Below the pieces are notes generated by a model, which did no database searches, was not told where the DNA came from, and saw only the letters and a program-made list of their open reading frames with translations. A stretch of DNA of 64,000 nucleotides. Origin: Lepidodermella squamata. Its lineage: Eukaryota > Animalia > Gastrotricha. The DNA lies in the NCBI GenBank assembly GCA_047495785.1, contig JBLDXI010000020.1:310001-374000 (forward strand), written 5' to 3'. The position numbers and the translations under genes are program-made. The number at the start of each line of letters is the position of its first letter. The first letter of the stretch is position 1. Of the stretch, positions 24,461 to 54,591 are shown in pieces.

Positions 24461-25593
24461 ATGCTTCGCTCCGCTGTTAAGCTGCTGCTGGTTGATACTG
24501 GATATGGAAGTGGCCGTTATTTATCGCTGTCGTCATCTCGAATGGCTGGTGGCTCTCTTGTTTTGGCTGAGCATGCCGGTGGAAAATTGTCACCGAGTGT
24601 TTTGAATACTGTTACGGCTGCTACTCAACTGAAAGGCAGTTCAGTCACTTGCGTTGTTGTTGGTCAAAAATCTAAAGACGTTGCTGGCCAACTGTCGAAG
24701 GTTGGAGGTGTTGGCAAGGTTTTGTTCGTAGAAAGCGATCACCTTAAGGGAACCCTGCCTGAGCCTGTTTGTGACATCCTCCTGAAACTTCAGCAGCAAA
24801 ACAATTATTCGCATATTTTAGCACCGAGCACAGCTTTCGGCCGAGTAAAATTTTGGCTTATTGATATTTCAATCGATACTAGCCTTTTATTTATAGGCTG
24901 TAATCCCTCGACTTGGTGCTAAGTTGGACATTGCTCCGATTTCTGATGTGATCAAAGTTAAAGACGGATCCACATTTGTTCGACTAATTTATGCCGGTTA
25001 GTTGCATTTTGTGATGTTATGCCCAATCTTAACTAATGTTTCAAGGCAACGCTGTTCAAACTGTGAAATCTAACGAGAAAGTGCAACTAATGACCGTTCG
25101 CGGCACTGCTTTCGAACCAGCTAAAACCGATGGTTCAGCGTCCGTTGAAGAGCTTAAGGTGGACGTAGCTGCTGGAAAAGCCGAATGGCTGTCTCAGGAA
25201 TTGAGCAAGTCCGATCGGCCTGAACTCGCTAGTGCCCGAATTGTTGTTTCGGGTGGTCGCGGTTTGAAGAGCGGTGATAACTTCAAGCTGTTGTACGCGC
25301 TCGCTGACAAACTGGGTGCCGCTGTCGGAGCTTCTCGCGCTGCTGTTGATGCCGGTTTTGTACCAAACGATTTGCAGGTTGGCCAGACGGGTAAAATCGT
25401 CGCACCCGAGTTATACATCGCCGTTGGTATTTCTGGAGCAATCCAACATCTCGCGGGAATGAAAGACTCGAAAGTTATCGTCGCGATAAACAAAGATCCT
25501 GAGGCCCCAATCTTTCAAGTGTCGGACTTTGGCCTAGTCGATGATTTGTTCAAGGCTGTTCCAGCAATGACCCAGTTGGTTGGGAAGAAATAA
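24461..25593 (+). CDS. ETFA: Electron transfer flavoprotein subunit alpha, mitochondrial
   Basis: Three exons (24461-24844, ~24897-24996, ~25046-25593); transit-peptide-like N-terminus; [66 protein letters not shown]. Confidence 0.97.
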
Positions 25594-43183: not shown

Positions 43184-43535
43184 CACATTATAAATTGTCA
43201 GTTCACTATTTCCCCCTTTTCATCAACAATATCAAAAATACAAAATTGAAAGGACTGTGAATAACCGCATTATAAAACTAAGCAGTCGAAACATTTCTGC
43301 AAAGAAAAACGAAGTTATGATGAATTTGTTTTCAGCAGTATTGATGGTTCACCTAGATTACAAGTCGACGGCGATTATGTGCGATCGAGGCAGATAGGAG
43401 AACAATATTGCAGCTGAATCAAAATTAGCATCAAGTTTACCGGAGGTACGCATGCTTGAGGGTGGCTACAAGGAATTTTTACTTTTCCGAACTGGCTTGA
43501 ATATAAAGTCTGCAAGTAAAAAAAACTGTAAATAA
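43184..43535 (+). pseudogene. Possible decayed Cdc25/rhodanese-like phosphatase remnant
   Basis: LPEVRMLEGGYKEF at 43437-43478 resembles Cdc25 YPExYxLxGGYKEF; upstream fragments FSSIDGSPRL and HIINCQF weakly echo CEFSSERGPRM and IIDCRY; stops and frameshifts between them. Confidence 0.25.
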
Positions 43536-44241
43536 AAGCACAGAAAATATTTTATAGGCCACTCACCGAAGGAATCGTCGAGCATCTTCTTGTTCATTAC
43601 CCAATCTTTGACGAAGTAGTCGGATTTCACTAAATGATAAATAAACAGTAGTTATATGAAATAGTGCATCAAGAGCATAATTAACCGTTCAAGATCATCG
43701 ATTTTTTTCTCTCGTCTTTAAACAACAGGAGAACAAATGTGGTTACGCTAATTAGTATTGAAGACATACCCAGCCAAATTGCGTTTTAGATGTCGATTAA
43801 AACTAATGAATAAGGATACTTTTAGTGATAAAATTGATTAAGGTTGAAAATAACCTACCCAACCAGCTCATCCAATTCTCTACGCAACCTAGGTGCAAAG
43901 AAGAATTAATCTTCTAGCCGCTGCTATTGTTAAAGCTCACTGTATATTGCTTGTCTTTAGGGCTGCAACCTCTTGTGTTTGACGCTTCAGTTTAGTCATT
44001 AGACTAGTAAATATATAGATTATGAAATTTGATTAACAGTTATCTTCTAGTTACACTTACAACTCAGCATCTTCAGACATCTTGCTGACGACGTTGGTGA
44101 TGTCCCTATGTGAATTGTAACACCATATATATTTTGCCAATAATGAATAATAGGGCATTACGTGAAATTGTTTTCAGCCATTGCGACTGGACGAGCAAAC
44201 AATAAGCAAACAGCTGTAAAGGATATTAAAAATAACATCAT
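43479..44241 (-). CDS. Small secreted coiled-coil protein (124 aa) encoded by 8 exons, six of them symmetric micro-exons
   Basis: Exons 44241-44162, 44105-44061 (45), 44003-43941 (63), 43888-43859 (30), 43802-43770 (33), 43715-43686 (30), 43629-43567 (63), 43509-43479; seven GT-AG introns of 52-57 nt, all phase 2; 375-nt open frame: MMLFLISFTAVCLLFARPVAMAENNFTDITNVVSKMSEDAEFLMTKLKRQTQEVAALKTSNIQLRRELDELVGFNRHLKRNLAGREKKIDDLEREIRLLRQRLGNEQEDARRFLRLYIQASSEK*. Confidence 0.8.
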
Positions 44242-44310
44242 TTACACAGTATAATAAGAACATGGGTTGCAAAGACTACAACTCAGATGTTGAAAATTAG
44301 GATGAAGAAT

Positions 44311-44354
44311 AGGTTTAGGATTAGATTTAGGGTTAAGGGTTAAGGGCTATGGTT
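44311..44354 (+). repeat. Short degenerate TTAGGG-like array
   Basis: aggtttaggattagatttagggttaagggttaagggctatggttgatttaaggg. Confidence 0.35.
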
Positions 44355-44679
44355 GATTTAAGGGAATCTGATAAATCTATTTTTAAGCAATCTTGTACGT
44401 GTAATTCTACTTTGGCAGTTATAGTAAAGTCCTGAAGAAACCAGAGGTCAGGCTCTATAATATAAGTAATGAGGAAAGATTATGATGCTTATAGTTAAGG
44501 ACTTCCGGCTAATTCAAATAAGGGAAGTCTTTCGGCTAATTTAGACCAATTATTATACGATATTTCAACTCAAACTCAAACGTTTTCGTTTAACCGATCT
44601 TTTGCACCAATTAAACTATAATATAAACAATCCATAATTAAAATAGGTACAAATGACGGAACGAGCGACAACAGACAAC

Positions 44680-44693
44680 GTTTCTATAGCAAC
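44680..44693. promoter_or_regulatory. Candidate RFX X-box
   Basis: GTTTCTATAGCAAC fits the GTHNYY-AT-RRNAAC consensus; ~440 bp upstream of the micro-exon gene ATG. Confidence 0.45.
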
Positions 44694-44706
44694 GAGACAG
44701 GCAACC

Positions 44707-45497
44707 TACAGATACAGATACAGAAGTTTTATTGTGATTCTCAGAATCTACAATTTGTCGAAATGATCACGGGGTATCGAAGAAAAAACAAATAAAGCTA
44801 GAGAATGAAGGGTAGTAAGGATATCCACACACAGTTAAGAAAATAGATTGATCTCAAGTGGTCATCTCTTGGACTGTTCATGAATTACGACGGTCTAGTA
44901 TGCATCCTCAGCTGAGAGTTAATCTTTGATGATAGCTAAAGGTCAAAACTCAAAACCAACTTCGTGGTTCGTCCTAAAATACACTTAGGTATCTCTTTGA
45001 TTGTTTTGCGATCATATCTTCAGACCAGCATCGGAGCATAGAGGGGTGGAGGCGCGACTATTTGGTCGTCTGATAGCAAATCAGTATCTTCAGTAACTGA
45101 GGATGGGGCAATTTTCTACTGTTCTACCGTTTTGGATTATGGATTATGGAATATAGAAATAAAGATTATAGAGATATATCGACGAATTTGGCAGCTTGGT
45201 GTGTGTGCTTGAACGAATTCATTTGACGAATGAAATCAATCACATTATTCACACCGCGTATCGACATTCGCCAAGTTAGAAAACCGTTTGTTGGCTGGTG
45301 GTGGGTATTTGGTATTTGTGGTCAAAGGGTAGACAATGTGGTACTCTTGCCCTATTGGTTCGGGTCCATTTTCAGGAAACTCTTCTTCTGACGTGCTTCC
45401 TTCGCGGCTTCTCTTCCTCCTTCGTAAAAACTTTCCACCACTTCGCACCTTCCGCTCACACACACCTTACACTTCACCAGAAAACCGAAACCCAACT
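44707..45497 (-). mobile_element. Probable 3' fragment of a non-LTR retrotransposon (element B)
   Basis: Minus strand ends AATAAAACT-(TCTGTA)3 at 44733-44707, a poly(A) signal plus short tandem tail typical of CR1/L2-type 3' ends; a short ORF tail (...KKSFLKMDPNQ*, stop 45352) precedes ~640 nt of UTR-like sequence. Confidence 0.45.
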
Positions 45498-46723
45498 CAG
45501 GATCAGGATCAGGATTTACGATTTCTCCTCGCCCTGACGGACTCAAGCTTTCACCATAAGGCGGAGCTTGTGAGAAAATCGCGAGCTTACGCTCTAGGAA
45601 AGTTTGAACTGGTTTAATAACTACATAATTGAAATCCCTACCCCTGGTACTCCAGTTATTGCTGACTGTTTCTCCAGGGCCCAGGCATTAGTGCCCAGGT
45701 GGCTTTTCCACTCACTCAGCGAAGCCTACAAACGCCGTCGTAGCAAGAAAGCTACCAAAAGACTAGTTTGGAGGAATATTTACAAGAGTAGAGATAATTT
45801 ACAAGAGGTAATTCACGGAGTCAAAATATAAGATAATGTAATGACGGAGCTATAAAGAAAATAAAGTATATTACATTTGGTTGAGTATAGGCTTTGAAAA
45901 ATATAAATAGAAATTTGGAAAAACTCATTTAGTTCGGCACGTAGTTGTAGACGAAGGCGGCTTTGGAGTACGGATTGAACGCGACCTGCGGCTGCAGAGA
46001 GGCGTTGAGTTCCTTCTTCTTTCGCTCGCTATTCGCCTTGATGATGGCGTCGTGTTTGGCCTGTTCGCGTAGGAATTCGAGCGTGGCTTGCCGGCACGCC
46101 TTTGTGGTAGCAGACAGCCTGATCTTCGCTGGCAGCTGGTTCCACCACTGGATGGCCTTGGTTGGGAACGAGCGCTGGCCTGTGGCGAGCTTGCACGATG
46201 GCTTGACGTACTTCCCGGTGGCGGCGCCTCGAGTGTTGTGGTCATGCTGTTGGTTCATCGGCTTGACTAGCGACGAGAGTGCCTCGGGGGTCTCAGGATC
46301 CCTGCTGCACTTCCACATGGTTGTAGCCAGGTGGACCAGTCGTTTGCCTTGCAGATTCACCCATCGCAATCGCACGAGAACTTCATCGGCGGGCACGTCA
46401 GGACTGACGTCGAGAACGGCACGAACGGCTTTGTTTTGCGCGTGTTGAAGTCGATCCAGCTGGGTCTTGCAGCCCTGATCGATGACGGCGTCGCAGTAGT
46501 TGAACTTCGACCCGATGATGCCGTCGTACATCATTGTTCGAGTCTTCAGGTCGGTGTGCCGAGCCGCTTTACGTAGTGCGTAGGTACCACTTCTTGCGGC
46601 TTTGATCAGATGATCGACGTGCTTTTCCATGGTGAGCTTTGAGTCCAGATAGACTCCCAGGATCTTCACGTGGTCAAGTGGCGGCAGATCGACTTCACCG
46701 AATCGAATTTCTGGAGCAGAAGC
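45498..46723 (-). mobile_element. 5'-truncated CR1/L2-like LINE (element A) with 3' UTR and (ATCCTG)3 tail
   Basis: C-terminal part of ORF2, ~430-nt 3' UTR and tandem hexamer tail at 45515-45498; the last 200 nt recur at 53923-54122. Confidence 0.85.
45929..46723 (-). pseudogene. C-terminal fragment of LINE ORF2 (RT thumb and downstream region), no catalytic YADD
   Basis: HVKILGVYLDSKLTMEKHV, SKFNYCDAV, LQHAQNKAVRAVL, LRWVNLQGKR, HDHNTRGA, QRSFPTKAIQWWNQLPAKIR are CR1/L2-clade ORF2 C-terminal motifs. Confidence 0.85.
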
Positions 46724-46889
46724 CTGTTGGTTAGACAAAAACATATAATAACAACTTTTTGAAAACTTAGCGCCACAAAATCATTGTACGTTGTAGCACC
46801 ATTTTGATTTATTTGATGAAGAGATAAATATAACAAAATATACTCAAATGTCACGGTTGCGCGCGCCAACAGATTCCGCCAACGCAAGC

Positions 46890-47063
46890 GCTGTTTGATT
46901 ATTCTGGAGGAGAAGTTAGCGTAGAAAGCAATGTGCCCAGAAAGCAGCTGCTTTCCATGCAGTAAGCCGTAATGAGCGTATGCGTGGAAAACACTGCTTT
47001 CCAGGCAATTTGCCTGCTACGCACTAGCACTGCGCTCTAGGCACTGCTTTCCAAGCAAATTTC
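46890..47063 (+). repeat. MULE left TIR
   Basis: Reverse complement of 54418-54591 with few mismatches; contains repeated CTGCTTTCCA motifs and palindrome GAAAGCAGCTGCTTTC. Confidence 0.93.
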
Positions 47064-47561
47064 TCCCGGAGTGCTTAGAATGCATTCTTGGCTCATTTCG
47101 CGTAGTTTTGCAGGTTGAGAATTACTGTTTCTGATGTTTGGGACACTTTTCTGTTATTTTGTCTAATTTTCGTACTCACACGCTTTACTCTGTACTATCT
47201 GGGCGATAGTATTTTTGAATTATGCTATTAAATTATTATTCGAGTACATAATAGTTTGATAAGGGTGTCACGTGTGTATCCGGTACAAGGGCGGGTCGCG
47301 TGGCGATTCCTTTTGCATCAGCTGTGCAGCACTTTTGTGGCGCGACAGTCTTGTGGTGCGTAAGCCATGCCATAAAACACAATTAGATAAGGATAACTCT
47401 CTTAAGTATACCTGGAACTACGCTGTCTTGTATTCCCTGTATGAGAACTGTTTGCCAAGTTTGAACCGCAACTCTGTACATTGTTAACGTTTATTCTCTT
47501 TTAATCCATAGGCTTTCAGTTATTCGCTTTTGTAAGCTTATTATTGAGTTGTTTTCTATCA

Positions 47562-50500
47562 ATGAGTCTCTTCGACGAGATTCGTCGTATGAACAAGAAA
47601 GTCATAAAAAAGGATGACATTATCCTCGCTATGCCGCCAGCTTTTCATGGCGATTTGCTTCTGTTTGCTGCGGACTATTTGAAAAAATTGGAGAAGGTAT
47701 GCATTGGTACATTTTACTTCCAGTCATATCTGTTTGCTATCTTATCTTATAGGAGGAAAAACAGATTTATTCCCACCCTAAGGACCACCTGTATTTCGAC
47801 GAAGGAGAGGGGGGTGCTTTGAGAGCCGTTTCTTTCCGGTTAGTTGTTGATTTTGCGGTTAATTTAATTGCAAACATTTTTCTTCATCCCTAGCTGTGCT
47901 GCGGGTTTCTCCGATGAGGCGACGATTAACCCCCGAACCCAGCTAGGTTGCAAAGCCTTCAAGCGCTTCGTCTTGGTGAAGACAGCGCAGGAGTATTTTG
48001 TGGCTATTCGTTCCGGTCCTCAGCCTCACAATCATGGCGACAACCTGAATAACCAGGAAAGTGTGATTCGTCACCTGCGCCACGATCAGGAAACCCTCAG
48101 GGCAGTAGAAGATCTGGTATCTACGAAGCTCTCAGCCACTGAGATTTCGAAGAGATCCTGTGAAGCTGCTGTCCTGGAGAAGAACTCCATTGCCGATCGT
48201 CGCAAATGCCTTGATCAACTCGACGTATACTCGTTCAAAAGACGAATTATGTCGTTGAAAGGTGCGCGGTAAGTGATTTTTATTTACCATGGTATCAATC
48301 AGGGACTACTTGTATGTTACAATTGATAATAGACTGGACAAAGTTGAATTCCACAGTGTGGAAAAGCTGGTGGAAGCCGACAGGGGGAAGCAGGTTCAAG
48401 AAGTTATTCATTACACTCCCGGCGATTCTCCGTCCGGTTTTGTCTTGGCAATGATGACGCCTCTCCAGCAAGCTCTCGTTGCCAACAATGAGATTTACGA
48501 AACTGGATTTCTGGACGCGACTTTCAAGGGCGTAACAAAGCATAATTACGCTCTCTATGCCATCGCCGCCGTTCAGAAAGGAGTCGAAAAATCTTTGCCG
48601 CTTGCGTTTGCCATCTTGGAACATGACGATGAGGCCAGTTTACGCCTATTTCTCACAGCGCTTCGCGACAAATGCATCAGTCTTAATCCTGCGTTCAAGT
48701 TTAGGCATGCCTTATCTCACTATCTTTTCAGTCAAGAATTACTGGGGTATTTTTCAGGACGATTGTCATCGATAAAGACCAGAAGGAGATCTCGCTAATC
48801 AAAGAAATTTTTGATTGTTGCGTTGTCCTGTGCTACTTCCATCTGCTTCAGGTAATTGTTCGAATACTTAAATAGGATTTTTACAATGTGGCTGTGTTAT
48901 AGGCTGTAATTAGATGGCTTCATGGCGAAAAATCTGGTTGTTCCGGTCGCTCTGAGAAGGCCAAGGCGGAGCGTTGCGCTGTAATAGACCTGATAGAGAC
49001 CATTCGAGCGTCTGGCAACTACGAAGAAGTGCAGAAAAAGTGGCGAGAAGGCAGCCCGAATCTGTCGCCAAAAGTCCGCACGTATCTTTGGGAATTTTGG
49101 GTTCAGGAGAAATATGCTGTGTTGTGGTGTCGCTATGCGCTCAAAAATTACCATCTTGACCAGGCTACCAATAACATTATTGAGGTGTAATTACTGATTT
49201 CGACTGAAACGACTTTATTATGTTTTCTTTTTTTTATTACGGTAGAACTTCTGGTTTTGCCTGAAATACACTTTCTTGAAGGTTTGTCCAGCTAGCTATA
49301 CATCATTTTATTCATTTCTGTTATCTTGTATCATTTCAGGGTTCTTATAACCGCCGGATAGACGATTTGGTATTTTTGCTTTCTAACGAGGTCATGTCAT
49401 ATTACGCGCATCTAATGAACCTCGATGCCCACGGTCGAAAAATCTTGAAGCTGAAGCATAAGCCGGAGCAGTTGGCTACGAAGCAAGCTGACAACGACCG
49501 TTTCTGCTCTACGGTCGTCTGGGGCGATGACCTCGTTACCGTACCGTCGTTCACGCCCAACGAATTCGACATCAAGTACGAGGTGAACCCGGCAGAGCAA
49601 CGGTGTTCATGTGTCTACAGTATTCACGGAAATATATGCAAGCATTTGCATTTCGTGCGCAAGTTGAATCCGGATAAGGTAAGACTTGGTTATTTTCTTC
49701 TATAAAATAATGTTAATTTTGCGTGCGGTTCATTCAGATATCCGTTTACCGTGATCGTCTTACGAAGTCAATTGTCGACGAAGGCCTCTGCGACAAGTTG
49801 GGCGATGAGCTACGAGTGATGAGCCCAATTAGCCATCACGTCAGCCTGGTCGACCTGAAGACGATGAGATGCGACTGCATGGCGTCGAGTTATGCGCCGG
49901 ATAAGGAACTTTGTTGTTGTGTTATGGCCGCTCGCCAGCTATTCCCAGGTATATTATTAAACAGTTATTCGATTTGCTGTTTTGTCATTTCATATGATTC
50001 AATTTTCAGTTGAAGCTGAGGCTGCTGACCAACTGCTAGTTCAAGCTCGTTCCACTGCGCCTAGTGTGAAAGATGCGGTTGCGGCATTTTCAAGCAACAA
50101 GGTTGCTCCGGCAACCAAAATGCCTGCAACGACACGCAACGCTCATTTCTCGAAAACCGGAATAAAGCGCTCTGCTCCTATCGACCCGGACGAGCCAAGC
50201 TCAAGCGGCGATCATCTTGCTGATCACTGCACGAGTGCTGACCCCCTTGCTGATCATAGAGTGAAGAAATTCAGAAGCTCTAAAAGAGGAAGACAAACGC
50301 ACAACGTGATGGCGAATTTCAGACGCCAAAACTGTCCCTCTGATGTGCCTGCTGATGTTGCCGCGCGACTTGCGTCAACGTCAAATGCACCGGAACCGGC
50401 ATGCACTCCCACCTCGCGCCTCGTTGGCCTGAGTCTACCCGGTCTGCGTATTCCTGGCCCGCTGCTCGCTGGAACCGGTTTGCGTATTCCACGCCCGCCG

Positions 50501-50662
50501 CTCCCTGGAACCGGTCTGCGTATTCCTGGCCCGCTGCTCGCTGGAACCGGTTTGCGTATTCCACGCCCGCCGCTCCCTGGTGCTGGAATAGCGGTTGTTA
50601 GCCCTTCCGGTGTGGTGATTTTGCGCCCTCCGGGCGCGGCTAATACAAATAATATCAACTAA
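47562..50662 (+). CDS. MULE transposase, ~860 aa, 10 exons
   Basis: Exons 47562-47696, 47753-47838, 47894-48268, 48333-48698/48704, 48758-48851, 48903-49184, 49246-49281, 49340-49678, 49738-49948, 50010-50662 splice to one open frame. N-terminal C...C...HNH Zn module, D (FLDATF), D (VIDKD), CYFH, E (TNNIIE), NRRIDDLV, SWIM finger CSC-x7-CKH. Confidence 0.88.
50439..50580 (+). repeat. Coding minisatellite: four 36-bp units (two 72-bp dimers)
   Basis: Encodes alternating GLRIPGPLLAGT / GLRIPRPPLPGT in the transposase C-terminus. Confidence 0.9.
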
Positions 50663-51448
50663 ACTTTCGCTATTAGCTCTCCGCTTAATCCTTTGTGTTT
50701 GCTCAACATCCGGCTTCTTGCATCCGCATGTGTGCGCATTGTGCGCGATGAGTGCCACTTCTTACACACTCATTAGCGATGACCGCGCGGAATTCATACT
50801 CATAGTTGACTCGAGTATAATTGAAACGATGAATGCCTCTTTCAACTTCGACACTGTTTTTCGGTTGTAAAATGTCTTTCTATTTTGCCGCATCGTGCGT
50901 GGAAATTGTTTACTATTGTGAACAAATTGCGGCTCGAGCCCGGTTATGGTGATTAATAGATCAATAATTAAATTGTGATAACAGATAATTGCAATTCAGG
51001 CGTAATAAATTGCGGTTTTCTTGCATCCTTGTGTGACATGTCTCATACCTTACACACGTGATATGCAATTTCGTTTTTTTTTAAAGTGAAAATGATACCA
51101 AGCTTGATGAATAAACATTCCGTTTTCAGTACACTTGTGGTTTTTTTACATAAATGACCCGATGTTCATGTTTATGGAAATATCACAGCTGACGTTTCAC
51201 GCTACCCAAGTGCGTCATCCACTTGAGAGCGCGCTTCTTTTAGCGGCGGGACCAGCTCCTTATGTCGACTGGTTAATAGCAAGGCGTACAGCCTCTCATG
51301 TCAGGTGTGGGTAGCTTACCGACAAAGCGGCCTAACAGGTGTCGAAACCATGCCGATTTCAGAGTCCAAAACACGAAAACAAATTCGTATCGCATTTATT
51401 TTGCAATTTTGTAATTCACATTAAAAGTCATCATCATTATTCATCCTT

Positions 51449-53206
51449 ATGGCTGACCGCAGGAAGGACGTTGAATGTCCCGACCTTGTCGACTCTCTTC
51501 TTCTTTTTCTGTCGCCGAACAATGGCCTGCTACGCACTTGGTCAGGACTTGCCAAACTGACATTCAAGTCGAACGCGACCACCAAGGCTGTGATTCGAGC
51601 GGCCTATTCAGGCGACTCACGTTACTACGTGCTGCTGAACGCAATCAGGTTGGCTGAGAAGAAAACTGCAAAGGAGCGCGACGACGGCTATTTCACCACC
51701 GTTACCCGAGAAGACGCTGTTAAGCCGATCAAGGTGATTGAAAGCGCTCTGAGGCTTCGCGTTCCGCTCATCAAACGCATCGATCTTCAACTGCCCAGCT
51801 TTTGCGATGATCCGCGCATGTTCAACCTGACCGCAGAACAAACAAGGTTAGTAATATAGAAGTATACGTTTTTACAATTTTTAGGCTATTTTTGGCTATT
51901 TTTGGCGTATGTACAGCGTCTCCCAAAAATTGCGAAAATTTTTTTAGTTTAGGTTGGTTTTAGATGGTAACTGGCTCGGTAATTTTCGGTATTTTACCCG
52001 GTTGGGCCAAATTCCTCCGGACCTTTTTAATCCCGTAAACCCGTTAGTGGCATACTTAATTATATTCTCGTGATTTTTGGATATTTTTATAAAATTTCTG
52101 GCCGTAAGATGGGACTTCGTCTCTCATTTATGAGTTTCTGAAGCCTTTTCCGTGCATTTTCTCCGCTTGCTGTACATATAAACTGTAGTTCCTCTTTAGC
52201 GCAAAACGAAACCTCAGAAATGTTAATAAGGTCCCTCCAATTAAGATAATTTGCCTCGTTATATTTTCAACAGAGAGTTCCTGAAATCTTTCAAGGTTCT
52301 GATCAGTCGCGGCCTACCGTCTGACGAAGTGACCAAGGGGGCTTCTAGCGTAGCGTTGCTCGTCGCCATCGATTTCATCGACAGGTCTATTGCCAGCATG
52401 TTGAACGAGCCAACGGCCATGTTGAACGAGTCCGTCGCGGTGTACGACAAGCTGGCGACCGAATTCATCGCGAAAAACAAACATCTTCTTCGCCCGAATT
52501 TGCCAATCATTCAGGGCAAGGTCAAAGTGAAGCCGCAGGCCATCGAAGAGGCTATGGCGAGCCCAGATGAAGAAATCGAATTCGATCGCCCAGGCTCAAG
52601 CGCGTCGAGCATCTCGCTTTCTTCGTTTTCCGAATCGAGCCATTCCGTTTTAGACCTGGAAGACGATGTCGATGTACTGAACCAACTGGCCGGCAATTCC
52701 GCTGACCAAACGATCGTCGCTGCTCCTCCTAATGAACGACCAGACAGCAGCGTCAGTAATGCCTCGCGAAAACGCCAACTGTCATCAGCCACGACCTCTT
52801 CAACCTTGCCGTCTTCGTCTTCTTCTACACCAATTGACAACGAGCCAGTCATACCTGAAACTGCAAGCGACGCTTCAGAATCTAAAAAGGTAATATCCAT
52901 CAACTGTGTTGCAGCTTTTCCTAAATGATTACCTTACTTACCTAGATTCGAGTGGACGAGACGAAGCTGTGGCGGCACATCTTCACGCCGAATCCACAAG
53001 ACCATCGCTTTCTCGACTTGACGCACCAATTCCCGCTCAATTGGCCGGCCGAAAATGTGCAGCTGCCACCCGAAGTCCAGGCTTTCAGCGACATGGTCTC
53101 GAATGGCGCGCAACCTGAACACGCAGCAATGCTCTGTTATAGAGGTTCTGAATTCTCTTGTGAAATCATTCACCATACAATTGATGCAATTGAAATAACT
53201 GTTTGA
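51449..53206 (+). CDS. Second MULE-borne gene, 424 aa, unknown function
   Basis: Exons 51449-51846, 52274-52889, 52946-53206 join in frame through GT-AG introns; helical N-terminal part, Ser/acidic low-complexity middle with RKR, compact C-terminal domain. No family recognised. Confidence 0.75.
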
Positions 53207-53922
53207 ACAACTAATCGATTTTCATTCGCTATTTCTTGTTTTCGACAGTTTCCGCTATCCTGCTTGGTTAATTAATTGATAGCTTGTGTTACGATGAATT
53301 TGTAGTTGAGACAGCATTGCAGTTTGCTAATTGACAGGCTTGAGCGCTCAATTTTATAATAAAACGTTTCCAATCAGCATATTTCTTTTCCGTCGCTCTA
53401 TAAAGGAGCCCTAAAAAGGCAGAATTCGTAAGTAACACGAAACATTTAGACAGACAGAAAGACTGTGAGAGGTAACAGAAAAGTTGAACTCAACTTTTTT
53501 GATGATTTTACGATGGGCGTCTAATCGAGACGAATCACACATAGGCGGTGAGGCGCCCCGACCGTTTTTAATTGCTAAACGTCGCGAGACAAATTGTAAA
53601 ATAAATCAGTATATCAGGGTGTCAGTTTACACCAGCTGTCAGATGACGTGGGACACCTCGATGTTTGCACGAGTGCGGTGACATTACTTCAATTAACCAG
53701 CCCGAGATGAGCTGGTCTCTTGTCTGTTAGTTGCATGTCGCAACTGTTTTTTTATTCCAGTGTAAAAAAATTCCTAATCCTGCCTTCTATGATAGGATAA
53801 AGGTCGGAGAAAGTAGAAAATTTCAATTATTTCAATCTTGGATGGGATAAAAATCAAGATTAAAAAAAATTGCTACCCTGTTGCATTCGAACTTCCATAG
53901 AACGCGCACCGATGTGCGCGAC

Positions 53923-54122
53923 CAGGATCAGGATCAGGAATTACGATTTCTCCTCGCCCTGACGGACTCAAGCTTTCGCCATACGGCGGAGCTGGTGAGA
54001 CAATTGCGACCTCACGCTCCAGGAAAGTTTGGTCTGGTTTACTGACTACTTAATGAATTTCCTACCCCTGGTACCCCAGTTACTGCTGACTGTTTCTCCA
54101 GGGCCAAGGCATTAGTGCCCAG
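53923..54122 (-). mobile_element. 200-bp 3'-terminal LINE fragment inside the MULE
   Basis: About 90% identical by manual alignment to 45498-45698, including the ATCCTG tail. Confidence 0.85.
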
Positions 54123-54417
54123 TAAATGTTCACTTGTTTCACGGTGGCAAATGGCAAAAATACGCGTTCCTCCTGAAGTAATGCGTTACTCAAAAAAAAG
54201 TAAAGTAATTCGCTATTTTGGCTTAAGTAACGCCTAAACACCTAATAATCACTTGATGGATGACCTAACGGCTAAGCATGGGGTCAAGGTCTAAAGAAAA
54301 TAACAGTCATAATGAAGCGTTTGAAAAACCTCACAAATGGTGTTTCAATAATATAACTATATTTTGGAATGTAAACCAACAGAATGGCGGTAAAAACGCT
54401 TAGAAAGCAGCGCTGGC

Positions 54418-54591
54418 GAAATTTGCTTGGAAAGCAGTGCCCGGAGAGCAAAGTGTGTGCGTAGCAGGCAAATTGCCTGGAAAGCAGTGTTTTCCACGCA
54501 TACGCTCATTACGGCTTACTGCATGGAAAGCAGCTGCTTTCTGGGCGCACTGCTTTCCATGCTAACTTCTCCTCCAGAATAATCAAACGGC
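54418..54591 (-). repeat. MULE right TIR
   Basis: Inverted copy of 46890-47063, followed directly by the TSD ACGCAAGC. Confidence 0.93.

Follow-up and report, generated by a model that had tools for sequence, protein, structure and literature searches.

The minus strand of the window (the whole 64-kb stretch of Lepidodermella squamata DNA analysed here) carries, at 44241-43479, an eight-exon chain that is very probably a real spliced protein-coding gene, to judge from its composition, from a paralogue elsewhere in the genome and from the heptad register of its predicted product. We think it reasonably likely that the gene specifies a small, probably secreted coiled-coil rod, that the coil would have grown by duplication of a module, and that the transcript would be spliced constitutively.

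Exon-intron structure

The gene opens with an ATG at 44241 in exon 1 (44241-44162, 80 nt, ending in phase 2) and closes with a TAA stop at 43481-43479 in exon 8 (43509-43479, 31 nt including the stop), which we have taken as the terminal exon. Between them lie six internal exons: exon 2 (44105-44061, 45 nt, 15 residues), exon 3 (44003-43941, 63 nt, three heptads), exon 4 (43888-43859, 30 nt), exon 5 (43802-43770, 33 nt, making 63 nt together with exon 4), exon 6 (43715-43686, 30 nt) and exon 7 (43629-43567, 63 nt, again three heptads). The seven introns, at 44161-44106, 44060-44004, 43940-43889, 43858-43803, 43769-43716, 43685-43630 and 43566-43510, measure 56, 57, 52, 56, 54, 56 and 57 nt in that order; all are GT-AG introns, and each interrupts the coding sequence in phase 2, between the second and third bases of a codon. 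The six internal exons are all multiples of three with phase 2 at both ends, in this gene and in its paralogue alike. Joined, the exons give a coding sequence of 375 nt for a protein of 124 amino acids ending at the TAA, and an in-frame TAA directly upstream of the ATG at 44241 closes the open frame. No open reading frame of at least 40 amino acids lies in the correct frame over the gene. The preliminary description had proposed just such a hidden eight-exon gene, and the proposal holds up: all of its figures, including the exon and intron lengths, the phases and the 124 residues, are reproduced from the sequence, and the paralogue keeps the structure.

Exons and introns differ in composition, the exons having 40% GC and the introns 29% GC and 41% T. 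As a control we considered a 49-nt phase-1 intron in the conserved ETFA gene (24987-25035, plus strand), whose acceptor reads CAAG; it shows that minimal introns, and acceptors with A at position -3, are also found in this genome's ordinary genes. Donor-acceptor distances here peak at 50-59 nt. Rfam searches of the whole window and, more permissively, of 43250-44800 gave no match.

We also considered a ninth exon. A GTAAAA overlapping the stop codon could serve as a phase-2 donor, with an acceptor 69 nt further on, but both donor and acceptor are lost in the paralogue, and the candidate exon lies in a block belonging to a repeat that is also present on another contig (C17, discussed below). 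We therefore rejected it.

The predicted coiled coil

Residues 28-124 of the predicted protein, about 97 in all, follow one unbroken heptad register of 14 heptads. One core position is occupied in succession by I, M, L, Q, L, L, L, L, R, L, L, E, F and A, and the other by V, A, L, V, N, L, N, L, I, I, L, A, Y and K. Of the 28 L, I, V, M and F residues, 18 sit at a and d positions, a count that none of 20,000 permutations matched, and there is a peak of power at a period of 3.5. The region contains no proline and no cysteine, and 39% of its residues are charged. Judged by its hydrophobic a and d positions over many consecutive heptads, the predicted product is a coiled coil, and the preliminary description's assignment to this class is confirmed by a 14-heptad register that contains no helix breakers.

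Leucine at one core position together with asparagine at the other is typical of parallel, in-register zippers. The likeness to GCN4-like leucine zippers extends to the occupation of the core, with leucine at one position and a beta-branched residue or leucine at the other, to two buried asparagines of the "a" type, and to the charged flanking positions. The protein differs from those zippers in that it is without a basic DNA-binding region, is a longer rod of 14 heptads, and has a probable leader.

A Pfam scan of exons 1, 3 and 7, with E-values up to 10 considered, gave no match, and neither did a metagenome scan with a 22-nt piece of exon 5. In a library of 1.84 billion representatives, the 41-residue open frame around exon 7 had no match at E <=0.001, although this blank carries little weight, as only 21 residues of that query are coding. 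With exon-sized queries of this kind (20-26 coding residues), no homologue was found outside this genome. The gene may thus be regarded, provisionally and on the strength of these exon-sized searches, as a lineage-restricted orphan.

A dispersed paralogue

A DNA search of the animal's own genome located a second copy of the gene, 88% identical, at G000:C33:2734375-2735147; we refer to it as copy B. The duplicated segment as a whole spans 43345-44690 of the window (minus strand) and corresponds to G000:C33:2734375-2735623, so that the gene is duplicated together with about 450 nt upstream and about 130 nt downstream of it. Around copy B, only about 1.25 kb of 60 kb matches the window. Because nothing else in those 60 kb matches, copy B is a dispersed duplicate, and the possibility that it represents a second haplotype or a homeologue was discarded.

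Exons 1 to 7 have the same lengths in the two copies, the introns of copy B measure 58, 60, 52, 56, 58, 61 and 56 nt, and all 14 splice dinucleotides are kept. Only 1 of 63 splice-signal positions differs between the copies, whereas intron cores differ at 10.7% of positions and the 5' flank at 11.1% (P=0.006). Insertions and deletions follow the same division: the 344 nt of exons 1 to 7 are free of them, whereas introns and flank, 837 nt together, have ten (P=0.016). The sole coding gap between the copies falls in the last exon; copy B is without the exon-8 TAA and reads nine residues further, giving an open frame of 133 residues rather than 124.

The codon positions have diverged unequally, by 18.7% at third positions, 11.3% at first and 9.7% at second positions (third against first and second combined, 10.5%, P=0.03), and the Nei-Gojobori (NG86) dN/dS, calculated exon by exon on complete codons, is 0.33. 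A ratio below one here comes from the unusually high divergence of the third positions, which exceeds that of non-coding DNA (18.7%, as against the intron-core and 5'-flank values just given, P=0.023). First and second positions have diverged about as much as introns and flank (10.5% vs 11%), so that constraint on the protein is weak. Silent sites have apparently changed faster than non-coding DNA between the copies. Exon 4 encodes identical amino acids in copy B despite five silent changes. Within the coil there are 20 residue differences, three at the 27 core positions and 17 at the 69 surface positions, a bias that is not significant (P=0.17); the core changes are all conservative (V>I, M>I and V>A). 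Taken at the level of sequence, the comparison gives a picture of two copies in which reading frame, splice sites and hydrophobic seam appear to be kept while the surface drifts almost freely.

A genome-wide six-frame search with exons 1, 3 and 7 found two copies only, and the genome contains in addition one fragment. This partial copy lies at G000:C3:599020-599220; its counterparts of exon 2, intron 2 and exon 3 measure 45, 51 and 63 nt, and their phases are unchanged. In its exon 3, six core heptad positions are kept or conservatively replaced and nearly all surface residues differ, and the flanking intron ends are 80-100% identical. Our attempt to extend the fragment into a full diverged paralogue found none. 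The fragment lies 260 nt upstream of an open reading frame with a Pif1 2B helicase domain (E 4e-12), and for this reason it may have been captured by a Helitron-like element.

Genomic surroundings

The duplicated segment (about 43345-44690) starts near one repeat and ends in another. The first, about 100 nt long and sharply bounded, lies in minus orientation at 44567-44667, at a distance of 330-430 nt upstream from the ATG. At about 91% identity it recurs at least five times elsewhere, including at copy B and at C24:431585, C3:1355769, C20:420147 and C54:1524492. No Rfam family matches it, and its fold is weak (z -1.8). This repeat could be a small RNA gene, the end of a MITE or a shared regulatory block. 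The second is a block of about 49 nt in the 3' flank (43357-43405), which is 98-100% kept in copy B (G000:C33:2734302-2734344) against a background divergence of 11%, and which recurs at 92% identity at G000:C17:2581564-2581613; copy B and the C17 locus share more with each other than either does with the window. The block is probably a piece of a repeat marking the end of the duplicated segment.

Several other features lie close by. A degenerate telomere-like tract at 44296-44346, with TTAGGG- and TTAAGGG-like units on the plus strand, stands 55-105 nt upstream of the ATG and is nearly unchanged in copy B. On the plus strand, open-reading-frame pieces at 43194-43535 contain an in-frame TAG, which is also present in copy B and at the C17 locus, and they end at a TAA within an AATAAA at about 43533, antisense to exon 8 and intron 7. 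We rejected the interpretation of the pieces at 43194-43532 as a rhodanese-like gene, there being no Pfam support and an in-frame TAG; they may be a pseudogene or mere repeat sequence. Upstream of the gene, an open reading frame of 271 amino acids (45929-46744, minus strand) has no Pfam match at E <=0.01; by eye, we take it to be the C-terminal part of a non-LTR retrotransposon reverse transcriptase. A first reading of the sequence placed a putative Mutator-like element further upstream, at 46890-54591. With a reverse-transcriptase-like frame and a Mutator-like element beside it, the gene sits in a transposon-rich neighbourhood, and a repeat-mediated duplication of the segment is plausible.

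Gene or chance chain

Part of the difficulty with a gene made of short exons and minimal introns is that chains of this sort are readily produced by chance. We counted ATGs that open a chain of at least seven introns of 52-57 nt with open exons between them, and each of ten Markov shuffles of the 64-kb window gave 5-32 such ATGs when any combination of phases was allowed. Since every shuffle contains chains of this kind, a bare chain of introns proves nothing. Restriction to seven-intron chains with short exons and a single phase left one in 200 shuffles, which makes such a chain rare per window, although a few would still be expected by chance in a genome of 121 Mb. When donors were required to agree with at least two of four consensus positions, the shuffles reached four introns at most. 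The other same-phase chains in the real window lie inside the long open reading frames of ordinary genes, and we dismissed them as artefacts of the method.

We considered the possibility that there is no working gene here at all, and that the locus is a chance chain or the decaying relic of a duplicated one, the two copies being alike merely on account of a recent duplication and the protein being under no selection. Several observations fit such a relic: replacement sites have diverged at the neutral rate given above, the deficit of core changes falls short of significance, the C-termini of the two copies differ, repeats flank the copies, and the fragment adjoins a Pif1-like frame; the frequency of any-phase chains in the shuffles fits the chance version. 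Against both versions stand the rarity of the single-phase chain and the contrast in composition between exons and introns. A heptad register that is kept across all seven junctions makes a chance chain unlikely, and the near absence of change in the splice signals, together with the absence of indels from exons 1 to 7, also speaks against a non-working locus; both frames remain open after 49 substitutions. We give very little credence to a locus that does not work.

A probable N-terminal leader

Exon 1 (44162-44241) encodes 20-22 hydrophobic residues resembling a signal peptide, an internal methionine at residue 21, whose ATG lies at 44181, and an N-x-T sequon. Hydrophobic residues make up most of the first 16 (mean Kyte-Doolittle value 2.54), after which comes R-P-V-A-M-A. 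Copy B keeps the ATG, and the four changes that precede Met21 (M>L, S>Y, F>I and A>V) all leave a hydrophobic or aromatic residue in place. The sequon that follows the leader is also kept in copy B, although its middle residue has changed. The preliminary description had called this a signal-peptide-like start, and as a statement of likeness this is accurate, a hydrophobic stretch followed by A-x-A being present and kept in both copies. A signal peptide is plausible on these grounds, and the balance of the sequence evidence tips somewhat towards a secreted product.

The same stretch of DNA has, however, a second possible reading. The first nine codons of the leader also make a good polypyrimidine-AG acceptor (44235-44214): the pyrimidine-rich tract before 44214 ends in CAG and resembles the gene's own acceptors. 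Met21 lies in a strong start context (G at both -3 and +4), better than that of the first ATG, where position -3 is T. The mRNA might therefore start at this point, or receive an upstream non-coding exon there, and translation from Met21 would then yield an intracellular coiled coil of 104 amino acids; the apparent signal peptide would be a T-rich 5' region that is open in frame by accident. T-rich DNA naturally codes for F, L and I. All four leader differences between the copies are replacements, with no silent change among them. The four replacements nevertheless preserve the hydrophobic character of the stretch, and copy B retains the ATG equivalent to 44241 with 20 codons open and free of indels. 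The order of hydrophobic stretch, proline and A-x-A is that of a textbook leader, and the sequon is kept immediately after the predicted cleavage site. A convincing donor 45-70 nt upstream of the putative acceptor is absent, and we found no report in the literature of spliced-leader trans-splicing in gastrotrichs. An intracellular form, and with it the accidental opening of the 5' region, is possible, but we regard it as distinctly the less likely of the two readings.

If the protein is secreted, the leader would direct it into the secretory pathway and would then be cleaved. The mature rod, free of cysteine and roughly 14 nm long, would pair or bundle with itself, and such self-associated rods might serve extracellularly as structural or matrix material.

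Origin of the symmetric exons

The introns interrupt the coding sequence after positions 80, 125, 188, 218, 251, 281 and 344, which modulo 63 are 17, 62, 62, 29, 62, 29 and 29. After the first intron, the positions thus form two interleaved series, within each of which successive introns lie exactly 63 nt (21 residues, three heptads) apart. When seven introns are placed at random with at least 27 nt between them, at least six pairs are separated by multiples of 63 nt with a probability of about 8e-5, or of about 0.002 given equal phase. That the internal exons are symmetric, and that 63 nt or 30+33 nt correspond to three heptads, had been pointed out before, and both statements follow directly from the coordinates.

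The simplest history behind these numbers would be one in which the symmetric exons are the footprint of tandem module duplication. The coil would have grown by repeated duplication of a 63-nt module of three heptads, split by an intron into 30+33 nt, and this module may itself have stemmed from a single exon of 10-11 residues. Two introns, at coding positions 155 and 314, would later have been lost, leaving exons 3 and 7 as fused exons. All of the surviving junctions would share one phase as a result, and splicing would be expected to be constitutive. A duplicated exon-intron module has equal phases at its two ends, so the all-phase-2 pattern needs no selection for exon skipping.

The modules themselves have kept no visible trace of such a history. 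A BLOSUM62 autocorrelation shows no peak at 21 residues above those at the heptad multiples, and hence no similarity of the modules beyond the heptad pattern. Alignment of the introns with one another gave z <=2.3 over 21 pairs, with introns of one series not significantly alike, and we dropped intron similarity as a proof of duplication. The duplication history is accordingly suggested by the intron positions, and by these only, neither the modules nor the introns showing similarity.

Fibrillar collagen genes, with their 54-nt exons, are the classic case of exons that match a structural repeat. The gene described here resembles them in that exon length is commensurate with the structural period and that a single phase is shared by the junctions. 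It differs in that the structure is a heptad coiled coil and not a Gly-X-Y helix, in having only about 3.5 modules, in the splitting of the module into 30+33 nt, and in modules that have no residual sequence similarity.

Comparison with schistosome micro-exon genes

The preliminary description had gone further and suggested a system, similar to the micro-exon genes (MEGs) of schistosomes, for varying the length of the coil. Those genes encode most of their protein in symmetric exons of very small size, typically 6-36 nt and commonly about 15 nt, within an overall range of 6-81 nt, and their introns are long (0.1-5 kb); variants produced by exon skipping are documented, and the genes are reported to be specific to the Schistosomatidae and to act at the host interface (PMC4350168; bioRxiv 10.1101/2023.06.21.545858). 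The present gene shares with them a leader-bearing first exon (the leader being putative here) followed by symmetric internal exons that are multiples of three, and a small product, predicted here to be secreted, that is overlooked by annotation based on open reading frames. Its internal exons, however, measure 30-63 nt and its introns 52-57 nt (52-61 nt in copy B), so that long introns are lacking, and exons of 36 nt or less (exons 4, 5 and 6 only) account for 93 of the 375 coding nucleotides, or 25%, so that the coding sequence does not lie mostly in tiny exons. Skipping, at least on paper, would mostly break the heptad register, which is a further difference from the schistosome genes.

It is true that with six internal exons of one phase, all multiples of three, any exon could be skipped in frame, and that loss of exon 3, of exon 7 (21 residues each) or of exons 4 and 5 as a pair would remove exactly three heptads and leave the register undisturbed. 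Skipping of these exons in combinations could in principle yield secreted coils of differing length. Lone skips of exons 2, 4, 5 or 6 (15, 10, 11 and 10 residues), however, would shift the register by 1, 3 or 4 residues, so that four of the six possible single skips disrupt it. Short exons with strong splice signals and minimal introns usually favour constitutive, intron-defined splicing, and this is the layout seen here, with signals that are strong and conserved between the copies. Full copies in the genome number just two, and the symmetry is already explained by the recurrence of introns every 63 nt. L. squamata is, moreover, a free-living gastrotrich (PMC11660948), and the host-facing role that had also been suggested has no object in a free-living animal. 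On this evidence we find no support for variation of coil length by a MEG-like device, which we consider highly improbable, and we continue to prefer a constitutively spliced rod.

Implications

On present evidence the locus is a neat but otherwise ordinary orphan gene, drifting fast and with a probable leader. A broader proposition would be that the gastrotrich genome routinely builds secreted helical proteins from symmetric exons matched to the heptad repeat (63 nt, or 30+33 nt), with rod length changing in steps of whole heptads. We think this unlikely. If it were true, the steps could be taken in evolution by the gain and loss of modules, or within the animal by skipping of the 21-residue exons, and the arrangement would carry the micro-exon gene principle over to a free-living animal and to a structured protein.

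The locus shows how a gene composed of short exons alone escapes annotation that relies on open reading frames, and also how such a gene may be told apart from the chains that arise so readily by chance when exons are short and introns minimal. Its exact 63-nt intron periodicity provides a clean, small example of a coiled coil that would have grown by module duplication, and a history of this kind accounts for patterns of symmetric exons without any mechanism of variation. If RNA were to show skipping that preserves the register, the micro-exon gene principle would extend beyond the parasitic flatworms.
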